A stretch of 64,000 bases of DNA from Paragordius varius (lineage: Eukaryota; Animalia; Nematomorpha): positions 5,704,001-5,768,000 of the forward strand of contig OZ176050.1 in assembly GCA_964247055.1 (NCBI GenBank), given 5' to 3'. A program made the translations under genes and the position numbers. This document shows, one piece after another, positions 19,147-32,100 of the stretch (within the stretch, counting starts at the first letter, position 1; every line of letters begins with the position of its first letter). Below the pieces are notes generated by a model. The model saw nothing but the letters and a program-made list of their open reading frames with translations. It did not search any database and had not been told where the DNA came from.

Positions 19147-19386
19147 TCATAAAAATATGCTAAATTTAGTATATATATGTACTTGATTAAGTGAAATGGC
19201 ATCGTTTTTTCTTGACCGTAATTATATCCTATAATTATTGATGATAAAACCTAAGTACACTATAAATGGGACAAATCCCCATTGAAAGAATATCCTAAAT
19301 ACGGTTCCCAAAAGACATATTTTATGCTTAAAAGGAGATATTTCGGTTTTATCATTTTTATCCAGCGAAAAATCAAAATCGGCCAT
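19147..19386 (-). CDS. TOMM7: Mitochondrial import receptor subunit TOM7 (3 exons, two micro-introns)
   Basis: Exons 19386-19251, 19228-19183 and 19159-19147 give MADFDFSLDKNDKTEISPFKHKICLLGTVFRIFFQWGFVPFIVYLGYNYGQEKTMPFHLINIFL*. WGFVPFIVYLG matches the TOM7 signature WGFIPLVIYLG, and the intron positions match the recalled vertebrate gene structure. Confidence 0.85.
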
Positions 19387-20151
19387 ATTCAAAAGAGTTA
19401 TTTTCCTGATGTTTGATGTGGAAAATTTGGTTACACAGAATTCTTGAACTATATTAAACAAAATATATTATAACAATATAAGTTATATGAATTTCAGCTT
19501 ATGAATAGATAAATGTATACAGTCGGAAATTCTGTAATTTTTAATTTTATATATAAAATTATACACAAAAAATACCTTGATGATTAGCTTATGTTCTGAC
19601 AAAATAAATTTATTACGACTTTTTTGGTGGTTTTTAATGGCCTTACGAACAATTAAAAAAAGCCAGTTTTGAGGAATCCGACATAAAAAAATCCCAAAGT
19701 TTTTGGTTATAGATATTTTCGGTTTTTCCATAAATATGACTAAAATATATATACCATATTGTGTACGAATTTTGTGGTTTTTTTTATAAAATATATTCTA
19801 AAGCTAAAACACCATAATAATCCTCACATATTTATCACGATGTAGTTTTGATATATAGGGTCGGGTGATAAAAAAAATTTTTTGACTTGACTTGCAAGTT
19901 TTTCAAGTCATGGCTTGCTTTCATGTGATAAAAAAATCCGCAATTTACATGTATGATCAAAATGTAAAATTATAATAAATCTTAATTATTTAGCTGCCTT
20001 TTACAATGAAAATTGTTAAAAAAACGGAAACTAAAAATTTATGTTAAAAATTGAAGTAATTAATTAAAAATTTCAGATTTCATTTTCATAGTAAATATAT
20101 TTATTGCTTCTTAAGTGTATTCTTTTGTGGATTTGGGTAGCTCAAGTCTGA

Positions 20152-20730
20152 TTAACACTTCGATTCAAATTAGGGTATCTAAATACCCCAGACTAAATTT
20201 TAGTTAGGATTTTTAAAAAACTACTGAAGAAAACGGTGCCAATTTAAATAAATGCTTCTATCCTAATAAAAAATATATAAATATGCCAAAATATCTAAAT
20301 AAAATTTTGTTGTGAAAAAATTCCATGTCACACAACTTCGACACCATGTTTATTTTACAAAATTTTTACAAAATATCGTCCATATTTATTTTTAAGGGTA
20401 AAATTAAAGCTAATTTTGTATTTAATTTTCATCTAACATTGATAGAAATAGAAAAAGCGGTTTATTTTGTATTATTTTTAAATTTACTATTTCACACATG
20501 TCACGTTGACGAATCTCTTTCAGTTTTAGCTTAAAATAAGTAATATCAAGTATTTTTGAATAAAATTTTTTATATATTTCGGTTTATTAATGTTATATAA
20601 GTGCAAATTTTGCCATGGTTTCGATTCCTTCCATATCTTTTAAGGAACTTAATTTAAACAGACCTGGGGTAACCAACTACCCCAATTTGAATCGAATGAC
20701 TTAAATGAGTGTGTTGTAACCAAGTGTTAA
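20152..20730. mobile_element. Family A piggyBac-like MITE
   Basis: TTAA|CACTTCGATTCAA ... AACCAAGTG|TTAA; opposite orientation to the 9470 copy. Confidence 0.8.
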
Positions 20731-20888
20731 ACTGATGGGAGCATTTTTAATTAAATTTTTACATATGATGTATATATTAGCAGGACATTATATTTTATAC
20801 AAATTTTAAAATTGATCTTTACAAAATTATCCATAATATTGGAATAATGTATTAATTTTTATATTAAAATGACATTTTTGGCTATTTA

Positions 20889-27949: not shown

Positions 27950-29070
27950 CAAATTTCTAAATACCCCAGACTAAATTTTAGTTAGGATTTTTAAAAACTA
28001 CTGAAGGAAACGGTGGCAATTGAACACTTCGATTCAAATTGGGGTATCTAAATACCCTTAAAATTAATATTCTTAAAAAACTACTGAAGGAAACGGTCCC
28101 AATTTAAATTTATGCTTCTATCCTGATAAATATTATATAAATATGCCAAAACACCTTGATAAAATTTGTTTTGAAAAAAAAGCTCTATCTCAAACTACTT
28201 CGACGCCATTTTTATTTTACAAAATTTTTGCAAAATATCGTCTTCATTTAATTTTACTGATTGTTTATTCAAATTACATCTAACATTGATAAAAATAGAA
28301 AAACGTATATTTTTTGAATTATTTTTTAATTTTACCAATTTACACATGTCACGTTGACGAAATTTTTACCTTTCAATTCTAGCTTAAAATAAGTAATATC
28401 AAGTATTTTTGAATAAAATTTTTTTTATATTTCGGTTTATTAATGTTAGATAAGTGCAAAATTTTGCCATGGTTTCGATTCCTTCTATATTTTTTAAAAA
28501 ATTTAGTTTTAAACAGGCCTGGGGTATCCAACTACCCCAATTTGAATCGAAGGACTAAAATAAGTGTGTTGTATCCAAAGGTTAAATTTATGCTTCTATC
28601 TAATAAAAAATATATAAATATGCCAAAATATCTAAATAAAATTTTGTTTTGAAAAAAAAGTTCCATGTCAAACTACTTCAACGCCTTAATTATTTTACAA
28701 AATTTTTCAAAATATCGTCTTCATTTATTTTTAAGGGTAAAATTAAAGCTAATTTTGTATTTAAATTACATCTAACATTAATAGAAATAGAAAAAGCGGT
28801 TTATTTTGTATTCTTTTTTACTTTTACCATTGCACACATGTCACTTGTCTAAATTTTAACCTTTCGGTTTTAGTCTAAAATAAATAATATCAAGTATTTT
28901 TGAATATTTTTTATATTTCGGTTTATTAATGTTATATAAGTGCAATATTTGCCATGGTTTCTATTCCTTCCATATCTTTTAAGGAATTTAATTTTAAACA
29001 GGCCTGGGGTAACCAACTACCCCAATTTGAATCGAAGGACTAAAATAAATGTGTTGTATCCAAGTGTTAA
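27950..29070. mobile_element. Tandem, partly duplicated family A MITE cluster upstream of SMARCC
   Basis: Partial left end at ~27950-28020, near-complete copy 28021-28585, then a second copy lacking its left end that finishes GTATCCAAGTG|TTAA at 29070, 50 nt before the SMARCC ATG. Confidence 0.75.
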
Positions 29071-29120
29071 GCCCTTTACCTAACGTTGCGACAAAGATAT
29101 TATACATTCATTTATAAATA

Positions 29121-32100
29121 ATGAACCCAGCTTCAAAATTCTTAGGTCGCTATTTCGAAGAAAATGTGATTCAACTAGAACATGTAATTAAATGGATGGA
29201 GAAGCATCATAAAAATGTTTTTATTATAATTTAAATTTAGCTTATAACTTTTGATTTGAATATCAAATATATTGTCAATTTGTTAACCAATTTCTCTATG
29301 TTTCAGGAAGATTACGTTGCACAACGTTTAGATAAATCAAATAGTTTTGTCAAAATACCTGTATTGTTTATGTGTAATTTTAGATTAATATATTTATGGA
29401 TTTAAAAATCGGAGGTTCCTTGTGTTACATAATTATGGCTATGCTTAAATATAAACATGAAAATAATATGTAAATACAAAATATATTTTTAGGCGTAAAT
29501 TTGATTTTACTTCCCCATCAAAGATAGAAGTAAACGTGGATTTGGTTAATTATATCGAAAAAATTTTGATTTCCAATAACATCCTGATCCCTCCTCGAAT
29601 ATACATCACTTCAAATGATACATCTCAAAATAACATAAAATTATTTTTTACGGATTTGGTTAAAAAAAGACACGGCGTCTTAGTCAATAATATTAATGAA
29701 GCATCTCATATCATATATTGTGAGCCTGTTGTGTCTTTACCATTTGAATCAAATATGCGGAATTCGACTCTTAATAAAGTTCTTGATGGAATTAACGAGG
29801 ACGTCGAACTAAATAATACAGACGAATCTAAAATATCAATTTTGAAAGCTAAGGGTATAACCGAAAAAGGTAAGTATTTATGTTTTGCCTATTTTTTTAT
29901 CCACTATAGTTGTTTTTAAAGCGCTCACTCATGATTGAAATATATAATATTGTTGAATTACTGCTAATTTTTTTGTAAATACATTATAGATGATGTTAGA
30001 TTTCGGATTATTGGTAAAAAGAGAAAAGAACTGCTCATACATTGGTTGCGATGTTCAGAAAGGTTAATTACGTTAAAAATTTACATATAGAATCAAATAT
30101 AATATACATATATATATATAATTGATGTGCCCAACATTATATTTATTTTTACCTTTTTTAAGATAATATTATTTATCCATTTTTTTCTTACTGTAATTTA
30201 TATCATGTATGAAGGCTTATTAAACTTTGAACGATTTTAACTCAAAAATTAGGGCTATATTTTAAATTAAGAAAATCTGTGATAACGTCCAGCATTCAGT
30301 AACTTTTATTTATTTTAAAAGCTATCGATGGGGGTGGGGGGGAATATGTTCTATAAGCTACTTGCACATATTTTTCATGATATTTTCATATTTAAATTTT
30401 TAGTTTGGATCAATGGATCCCTGATCTTGATATTGATACTGAACCCGAAAATTATGGCAAAACAGATATTAAAAAATGGCATTTATCGGCTTTGTGGTTA
30501 TTGGATTCAGACCTTGCTTGTGAATGGTTAAATGAATGGGATTATATTATTCCAAATAAGGTTTTAATTTGATTATATTATTTCAAATAAGGTTTTAATT
30601 TGATTATTCTAAATAAGGTTTTAATTTGATTATACTTTTTATTTTTAAAAATTTTACGAAATCATATTATTAATCTATAGTAAAATCATAATTATAGAGA
30701 TATCAAACATAAAAACTAAAACATATATTTTTTAATATTTTTTTAATAAAATCTTAATGATTAAAATTGGAAAATAAATAAAGTAGCGATTTACTAATGT
30801 ACATCTCTTTTTCCTTGCATTTATACCCAAAATAGGATATCACTTAATTCAAAGTTGGCTCTCCTTACAAAAAATATTTGTTTAAGTTTTCATTTCATGA
30901 TTTCAATTTTTTCTGTAAATTTAAATTTAGATGCTAAATGAAGATACGGAAGATATTGGTATTTGTAAACTGTCATACACAATATTTGATGTAAGTTATA
31001 TATAGTAATACTAATTTTTTTATGAATTAAATATGTTGTGATAACTAAAAAGTTACAGTGATTTGGCTTTTTTGAATCTATATTTGTAATTTAATTTTTT
31101 TCATATAATTTAATTAGCTGATAATATTTTACTATTTAATTATCTCTAATATTCATTTTGTCCGCAAAGTTAAATAATTTCAGATCACATATAATTGGTT
31201 TATTTTGCGTTTTTTTAGTTCAAAGGCGGAATTCATAATCCAGCAAGCTTAGCCGCTTTAACGGGCGCTGTGAATCAAATTAGAGCGGTTCGACATAAAG
31301 CGGATCATGCATTAAATACCCATTTTACCATTCCCGCTTCCCAAAACACAGAAGTGTATATTCAATCTTTGCTGGCTAATTTAACACAATCATGGATAAT
31401 ATGTAATAAAGTTAGTCAAGCTTTGACTAATAATACAAATAACTCATTTTCTGGTAATATATTATTTGGTTGTTTCCTTTAATTATATGATTATTTTTTA
31501 TATATATGACCCTTCTAATAATAAACTTTTTAAAATAAGCAACGCACTTTTCGATTTCAAATAAGATCAGGTTATAAGCGTTTAAAGTGGGAGTATACCT
31601 TCTTACCTTAATAGTTTGTCGTATTTTGTAGCCCTCATAAAGCGCCAATAAATAATTTTATTTCCACCTTACCGCGTTATTGGCAGGGGCGCGAAAACGC
31701 TTATTGTAAAGTCATTAGTTATACACAAGGGCACGTTACGTAAAAAATCGCCTTAATTATCTATGAAGTATGAATATTTTTACTCTGGAGTCCTGATTTA
31801 TACCTATCTAATATCAATTAACTTTGATGAAAAACCTTATTTTATAAGGGTGATAGGTTTATGTATCATCATTTATTTGTGTGTGGAGAGTTAATATTTT
31901 TTGTTGTATACGAAGGTATCAAAAAGGAAGCAAGCGCCTTATCATCCAATGTTGAAAAAGCCACACATATTGGCAAAAATGGTGAATCATTGATTGATAA
32001 TATGGATGAATCTTCAAAGACAACTGCTGGTTTAATCGAGTCAGATGTTTCGATTGGGAAAAGGAAAAGGTAAACTGATTATTATCAGCCATAATGTTTT

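Follow-up and report, generated by a model that had tools for sequence, protein, structure and literature searches.

Introns of 22–24 nucleotides with a 3′-anchored motif in the hairworm Paragordius varius

Introduction

The canonical metazoan branch site (yUnAy or CURAY) usually lies about 18–35 nucleotides (nt) before the AG acceptor and is accompanied by a polypyrimidine tract. In general, animal spliceosomes are thought to require such a tract, together with far more room between the donor, the branch point and the acceptor than is available in the introns described here. These are eight GT–AG introns of 22–24 nt, hereafter micro-introns, that are found in three genes of the hairworm Paragordius varius: a TOM7-like gene has two of them, and PDHB and a SMARCC-like gene have three each. 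The three genes lie in a stretch of 64,000 nt (assembly GCA_964247055.1, contig OZ176050.1, positions 5,704,001 to 5,768,000), which is referred to as the window and within which all positions below are counted. Every micro-intron carries TA at positions −9 and −8 from its 3′ end, and this motif resembles the core of a branch site.

The closest described systems are found in protists. In the type B introns of Trichomonas vaginalis and T. stableri (and Giardia), which are 23–28 nt long, the branch site is fused to the 3′ splice site (PMC12316389). As in these introns, the motif of the micro-introns is found at a fixed and very short distance from the AG, within what appears to be a single 3′ element devoid of a real polypyrimidine tract, and longer introns coexist with the short ones (PMC12316389). 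By contrast, Trichomonas has a strongly conserved 12-nt motif of the A/T-CTAAC-ACACAG type and, in addition, an extended 5′ motif (PMC12316389), whereas the micro-introns conserve only T−9, A−8, A−7, T−5, T−4, the AG and a GT(A) donor. The host is also different, as it is here an animal with many introns per gene.

The ciliate Stentor coeruleus has introns of 15–16 nt in which the putative branch A is nucleotide 10 of the 15-nt introns and nucleotide 11 of the 16-nt introns, that is, at −6 in both cases (PMC9505925). The distance from the A to the 3′ end is thus constant, the surroundings are U-rich and weakly conserved, and no polypyrimidine tract is present, all of which is also observed in the micro-introns (PMC9505925). 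Nevertheless, nearly all introns of Stentor are tiny, while those of 22–24 nt are here mixed with long ones of 100–1000 nt in the same genes, and the candidate A is at −7 or −8, after an invariant T, instead of at −6. The initial annotation of this locus had likened its introns to the tiny introns of ciliates, which is right for Stentor, although the fused branch site and 3′ splice site found in Trichomonas introns of 23–25 nt is a closer precedent.

Among animals, Myxozoa (myxobolid) and Dicyema are the only lineages for which a 2026 survey of 51 genomes reports introns below 30 nt (PMC13644364). The introns of about 20–27 nt of myxobolid Myxozoa and Dicyema japonicum contain weakly conserved As, which were read as the branch point and which are further from the AG as intron length increases (PMC13644364). 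The micro-introns are similar in that they are animal GT–AG introns below 30 nt, with reduced splice-site motifs and conserved As before the AG. However, both of these published lineages are highly reduced parasites, and their signals, being measured from the 5′ end, take another form. In contrast to such 5′-anchored As, the T-A-A described here is nearly invariant, and its TA keeps one register relative to the 3′ end in introns of 22, 23, 24, 41 and 74 nt. Moreover, the genomes of those lineages are compact, while the window is rich in repeats, with long introns and a low gene density.

In effect, a fused branch and 3′ splice-site element is a known kind of mechanism, since a fixed short spacing is known in Stentor (PMC9505925) and Trichomonas (PMC12316389). 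What is distinctive here is the animal host, the anchoring at the 3′ end, a motif that is much weaker than that of Trichomonas, and the coexistence with long introns in the same genes. A literature search found nothing on hairworm introns, and no mention of introns was found in the genome paper of Gordionus montsenyensis.

Micro-introns in three genes

The introns were assessed by means of homology matches obtained with individual exons (against Pfam profiles and chains of the PDB) and by translation of the spliced proteins in silico. All eight micro-introns begin with GT and end with AG, as does a 41-nt intron of PDHB. Their A+T content is about 90%, and they share their genes with longer introns of 41–770 nt.

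In the TOM7-like gene, intron 1 spans 19229–19250 (− strand; 22 nt, phase 1, last nine bases TAATTATAG) and intron 2 spans 19160–19182 (−; 23 nt, phase 2, last nine bases TAAATTTAG). The exon upstream of intron 1 matches positions 9–26 of the 41 positions of the Pfam Tom7 profile, and it ends at residues 25 of 46 and 34 of 55 of PDB TOM7 chains. With both introns spliced, the C-terminal tail that follows has 19 residues, compared with 21 expected, whereas read-through gives 9 residues. The splicing of intron 2 is required for this tail to reach a stop codon, and it is the frame and the expected length alone that argue for this intron. A word search for orthologues with TOM7 exon 1 found no relatives.

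PDHB, on the + strand, has micro-introns at 21560–21582 (intron 1; 23 nt, last nine bases TAATTTAAG), 21634–21656 (intron 2; 23 nt, TAAATTTAG) and 21905–21928 (intron 4; 24 nt, TAATTTAAG). Between the last two lies the 41-nt intron 3 (21828–21868, +), which ends in TATTTTTAG and thus has TA at −9/−8, as had been claimed for it in the initial annotation. All four are in phase 0. When intron 1 is spliced, an ATG-initiated exon of nine codons is joined to exon 2, producing a basic N-terminal presequence of 26 residues; this intron is suggested by the reading frame alone. Exon 3, downstream of intron 2, matches residues 3–59 of human PDHB (3EXE_B), and the N-terminal extension needs the splicing of intron 2 because there is an in-frame stop codon directly upstream of exon 3. 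Exon 5 corresponds to residues 72–92 of 3EXE_B, and the 12 residues that intervene are equal to exactly the 36 nt of exon 4, which supports introns 3 and 4. In addition, read-through of intron 4 leads to stop codons.

In the SMARCC-like gene, also on the + strand, intron 1 is at 29217–29240 (24 nt, phase 0, last nine bases TAAATTTAG), intron 2 at 29361–29383 (23 nt, phase 0, TAATTTTAG) and intron 3 at 29470–29492 (23 nt, phase 2, TATTTTTAG), the last being the sole micro-intron with a T at −7. Searched individually, exons 1 and 2 had no match in PDB or Pfam. Together they encode 72 residues, compared with the roughly 75 profile positions that should precede exon 3. The exon upstream of intron 2 is open solely in the frame that joins it to exon 3, which in turn matches residues 82–106 of SMARCC1 (6YXO_A) and positions 76–101 of the Pfam profile SWIRM-assoc_2. 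Positions 104–134 of this profile are found in exon 4, and the last full codon of exon 3 plus the split codon account for positions 102–103. Thus, the profile is exactly contiguous over the splice of intron 3.

In sum, the removal of the 22–24-nt segments restores the reading frame and, for four of the eight, also the colinearity with homologous proteins, as would be expected of U2-type GT–AG introns, and on the evidence of the sequence they are taken as such.

The initial annotation had listed nine micro-introns with TA at −9/−8. Eight were recovered in place, with the last nine bases that had been reported for them, while the ninth was not found: the first 9-mer of that list, TATATTTAG, is absent from both strands of 19000–29600. 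By list order, it would belong to an upstream intron of TOM7, and the sole candidate there is a 22-nt GT..AG segment at 19295–19316 (−) that ends in CGTATTTAG. This segment is not an intron, because its removal shifts the TOM7 frame and deletes residues within the Tom7 profile and the PDB alignments. The analyses below are consequently based on eight micro-introns.

A scan of 18–32-nt GT..AG segments over all gene spans, which was blind to the motif, gave no further homology-supported micro-intron, and in particular no such intron without the motif. Several other short segments were considered and rejected. A 23-nt segment without TA at 45041–45063 (−) has its real donor 21 nt upstream, where an intron of about 1 kb opens. 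Of two 33-nt segments, the one at 62195–62227 (+) leaves a wrong downstream frame, the real intron being 62154–62227, and the one at 1490–1522 (+) represents the acceptor of a long intron in the collagen gene. Finally, no support was obtainable for a 21-nt segment at 42419–42439 (−).

The position of the micro-introns in their genes is also worth describing. All eight are the 5′-most introns (PDHB introns 1, 2 and 4, SMARCC-like introns 1–3, and both introns of TOM7), and every downstream intron of PDHB and of the SMARCC-like gene is at least 70 nt long. Regarding their coding properties, the two micro-introns of 24 nt (21905–21928 and 29217–29240), whose length is a multiple of three, both contain in-frame stops, while three of the other six, with lengths not divisible by three, contain none. 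The in-frame stops in both 24-nt introns fit selection against silent retention, with only two cases to go by.

A motif fixed from the 3′ end

When the eight micro-introns are aligned by their 3′ ends, T−9, A−8 and T−5 are present in all of them and A−7 and T−4 in seven, while the other interior columns are an unconstrained mixture of A and T. The 3′ consensus is T A A W T T W A G, and the TAA that had been attributed to seven micro-introns is indeed found in 7/8. A C precedes the TAA, at position −10, in only one of the eight, and there is no ACAC. The 5′ ends have little in common beyond the GT, with an A at +3 in 5/8, which agrees with the initial description of these ends as sharing just GT plus AT-rich bases.

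It might be expected that TA is frequent at any position of introns with such a composition. As a reference, the remaining 22–24-nt GT..AG segments of the window were used as decoys, and TA at −9/−8 is found in 77 of 635 (12%). The frequency increases to 38/185 (20.5%) in decoys with at least 80% A+T and to 18/68 (26%) in those with at least 88%, and TAA at −9 to −7 is observed in 5–12% of decoys. Depending on the background that is chosen, the probability of finding TA in eight of eight is between 5 × 10⁻⁸ and 2 × 10⁻⁵, and Fisher's test against the AT-matched decoys gives 6 × 10⁻⁶. A frequency of TA in short introns no higher than their A+T content predicts had been named as one of the results that would go against the proposal; with 8/8 against 20.5% in AT-matched decoys, the excess is present.

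As the register was picked after viewing the data, a second test was made in which the interior of each intron was shuffled and the best score over 11 positions and 16 dinucleotides was taken. A score of 8/8 was reached in 43 of 200,000 shuffles (P = 2.2 × 10⁻⁴), and this value holds despite the late choice of the register because any position and any dinucleotide were allowed. Thus, the excess of TA in micro-introns exceeds what chance would produce.

Since the micro-introns differ little in length, a register fixed from the 3′ end has to be distinguished from one fixed from the 5′ end. The best 5′-anchored dinucleotide is found in 4/8, compared with 8/8 for the 3′-anchored TA. In the 22-nt intron and the two 24-nt introns, TA remains at −9/−8 but the register at +15/+16 is lost, and TA is at −9/−8 also in the 41-nt PDHB intron and in a 74-nt intron of an SRPK-like gene, described below. 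These observations support a register that is set from the 3′ end and not from the 5′ end.

Longer introns of the same genes

The comparison set of longer introns (at least 70 nt, n = 32) comprises six from PDHB, three from the SRPK-like gene and 23 from a model of the SMARCC-like gene, and some of them are uncertain. An exon-chain gene model, scored by codon usage, was used solely for proposing long-intron ends. The model is weak: it recovers the true PDHB exons only at penalties that also admit false ones, and it fails on two SLC7-type genes.

TA at −9/−8 is present in 8/8 micro-introns and in 6/32 longer introns (Fisher P = 4 × 10⁻⁵), and TAA at −9 to −7 in 7/8 and 3/32, respectively (Fisher P = 5 × 10⁻⁵). 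When only the longer introns judged to have conserved flanking exons are counted, TA is found in 4/18, which is the background level. The six long PDHB introns, all on the + strand (21992–22335, 22481–23207, 23286–23548, 23660–24296, 24389–25101 and 25244–25354), have no TA at −9/−8, and their 3′ ends are exactly those that had been listed in the initial annotation; the exon chain to which these introns (span 21992–25354) belong gives a full PDHB protein that ends in a stop codon. The contrast between short and long introns that was drawn from these six holds, then, as a difference in frequency: over the larger set the long introns are at the background (6/32), not completely without the motif. 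Within PDHB intron 5, a long (TA)n microsatellite occupies 22003–22077.

The 74-nt intron of the SRPK-like gene is at 62154–62227 (+) and ends in TATTTTTAG; in the exon-chain model, it joins two flanking coding exons in frame. The gene is presumably an SRPK by its resemblance to the human protein, and the one exon that was searched had no Pfam match. The intron that follows the 74-nt one, of 132 nt (62337–62468, +), ends in TAAACATAG and has TAA at −9 to −7. The 3′ cassette of the micro-introns may also serve some introns of greater length.

A possible composite 3′ element

The string T−9 A−8 A−7 W−6 corresponds to the central bases of (C)URAY, the branch consensus of metazoans and plants. This consensus, also in its UACUAAC form, pairs with the GUAGUA box of U2 small nuclear RNA. 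The last nine bases of the micro-introns probably act as a composite 3′ element in which a U-R-A branch site, whose branch A would be at −7 or −8, is followed by a T-rich spacer of 4 nt and the AG.

In such an element, T−9, A−8 and A−7 would be the branch-site core, corresponding to the U-R-A of (C)URAY or UACUAAC, and the branch adenosine would be at −7 in most micro-introns and at −8 where −7 is a T. The four T-rich bases from −6 to −3 would be a minimal spacer that replaces the polypyrimidine tract, and the AG would be the acceptor. Just four T-rich bases lie between the motif and the AG, which leaves no room for a polypyrimidine tract. The register would be fixed because so short an intron leaves a single place for the branch, one that is far enough from the 5′ splice site for a lariat loop of 16–18 nt and just far enough from the AG for the second step. 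A fixed distance between branch and AG would in turn confine the variation in length among introns of 22, 23 and 24 nt to an unconstrained AT-rich spacer of 7–9 nt behind a weak GT(A) donor. The long introns presumably have branch points further upstream.

A site of this kind would share with the canonical metazoan branch site the U two bases before the branch A, the purine just before it, and the AG acceptor. It would differ from the canonical site in being about 7 nt from the AG, with no room for a U2AF65-type tract, and in leaving about 16–18 nt between the 5′ splice site and the branch, which is far below what is usual for the assembly of an animal spliceosome. The initial annotation had proposed a branch point fused to the 3′ splice site at a fixed distance. 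The fixed 3′ register, the URA-like motif and the lack of room for a polypyrimidine tract support this in part, while the identity of the As as the branch point, as well as that of the factors that would recognize the element, is something that we infer.

Several observations weigh against reading the nine bases in this manner. The sample is small, with eight introns from three genes, and for half of them (PDHB introns 1 and 2, SMARCC-like intron 1 and TOM7 intron 2) the support comes from reading frame and length alone. Five runs of the species are possibly of RNA, each of them containing next to none of the window's sampled words, and the three that were compared with 19140–25139, where TOM7 and PDHB lie, gave no contig there. 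The anchoring comparison is thin, because five of the eight micro-introns are 23 nt long, and it depends on three micro-introns and two longer introns. As for the motif itself, there is a T at −7 in 29470–29492 and in the 41-nt intron, and the surrounding bases fit URAY poorly. Finally, no branch-site consensus was detected in the long introns, where YTAAY is present in 44% of 3′ windows and in 32% of the control, a difference that is not significant. Because of this lack of a detectable consensus, TAA is not independently confirmable as the branch motif of the organism.

Alternative explanations

The nine bases could instead be an extended 3′ splice-site signal that is read by a protein, for instance a U2AF-like one as in the case of the nematode UUUUCAG acceptor, with another A acting as the branch point. 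This is rather unlikely, even though part of the data favors it. T−5 and T−4 are as conserved as TA, two cases have T at −7, and in Nematoda, the sister phylum, the acceptor motif is known to be read by a protein and no branch consensus is known. However, the best conserved positions include two purines (A−8 in 8/8 and A−7 in 7/8), which is atypical for the target of a pyrimidine-tract binder, and the motif matches the U-R-A of the branch consensus. In addition, the same proteins should serve the long introns of the same genes, yet the motif is found there in only 6/32.

Chance, or the manner in which the introns were gathered, is a quite improbable explanation. In introns with about 90% A+T some dinucleotide will line up, and the register was chosen with the data in view; only eight introns are available, TA is found at this register in 20–26% of AT-matched decoys, and one of the nine examples originally listed does not exist as written. 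Nevertheless, the shuffle test, which extended over 11 positions and 16 dinucleotides, gives P = 2.2 × 10⁻⁴, and the scan of the gene spans by which introns were picked was blind to the motif.

It is slightly less probable still that a single inserted element gave rise to all the micro-introns, each copy keeping its 3′ end, or that some of them are artefacts of the gene models. An identical 9-mer, TAAATTTAG, is found in three introns and another, TAATTTAAG, in two, and the possible RNA runs gave no contig on TOM7 or PDHB. By contrast, there is no similarity beyond the last nine bases, identical 9-mers are expected from a consensus with four variants, the host genes are unrelated, and only with the segments removed do the exons agree exactly in length with human PDHB and the SMARCC profile.

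The least credible possibility is that TAA is a safety stop codon that sends transcripts with a retained tiny intron to mRNA decay, a role proposed in Paramecium. Both 24-nt micro-introns, being multiples of three, do have TAA in frame and contain in-frame stops. However, relative to the upstream reading frame the triplet at −9 to −7 is in frame in just 2/8 and out of frame in the six others, for which reason it is not a stop-codon signal. A requirement of this type would shift with the phase of the exon instead of keeping a set distance from the 3′ end, and introns that are not multiples of three shift the frame upon retention anyway.

Implications for animal splicing

A wider proposal can be made, tentatively and with slightly less than even confidence. 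Hairworms would join Myxozoa and Dicyema as a third lineage of animals that has introns below 30 nt, and they would be the first animals to place the branch by measuring from the 3′ splice site. A 9-nt cassette (TAAWTTWAG) would replace the separate branch site, polypyrimidine tract and acceptor, beside conventional long introns of the same genes. Should this be true, one animal spliceosome would use two modes of 3′ splice-site recognition, and it would do so in a genome that is not compact.

If confirmed, the system would be a natural one in which to study the minimal architecture of an animal intron, the recognition of a branch without a U2AF65-type tract, and the clustering of tiny introns at the 5′ end of genes. 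There is also a practical side, since introns below about 30 nt are usually passed over by gene finders and read aligners, and a defined motif would aid their annotation.

Other features of the window

The G+C content of the 64,000-nt window is 27.6%, and that of the published assembly of Gordionus montsenyensis is 26.93%. The window has many repeats, long introns and sparse genes. The animal genes that it contains are collagen, TMEM129, a Shaker-type potassium channel, TOM7-like, PDHB, Pcc1-like, SMARCC-like, two SLC7-type permeases and an SRPK-like kinase. An exact look-up of the Pcc1-like open reading frame (ORF) returned no record.

The TMEM129-type gene is at 5337–9068 (−). Positions 1–219 of the Pfam profile Tmpp129 are found in a single exon of 259 codons (8292–9068), and positions 293–347 in the last exon (5337–5546). 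The SLC7-type genes are tandem paralogues of an amino-acid permease (Pfam AA_permease_2) at 41396–45673 (−) and 52334–55995 (−). In the first copy, the first intron is about 1 kb long and contains repeat-derived sequence that includes a G/C-rich segment.

An element similar to a miniature inverted-repeat transposable element forms an inverted pair just upstream of PDHB (20140–21450) and is repeated in tandem before the SMARCC-like gene (27940–29070), and similar pieces are found near 9500–9900, 48100–48400 and 50800–51250. In run X4, whose kind is not on record, its summed contig depth reaches about 19,000, compared with 2–15 in the flanking unique sequence; the element is thus a very abundant repeat family. 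Where contigs of this run are listed on the locus, they have no or few differences from the window.

The Shaker-type channel is encoded by a single-exon ORF at 17035–19107, and a word search with it found distant animals only, with up to 64% identity. Directly upstream is an open frame of 564 codons (15133–16824, +) with no Pfam domain and no relative found by word search. Within the channel ORF, positions 18277–18390 (+) match the Rfam family K_chan_RES with 84 bits, against a gathering score of 51, which suggests that the conserved adenosine-to-inosine editing hairpin is present in Paragordius varius.

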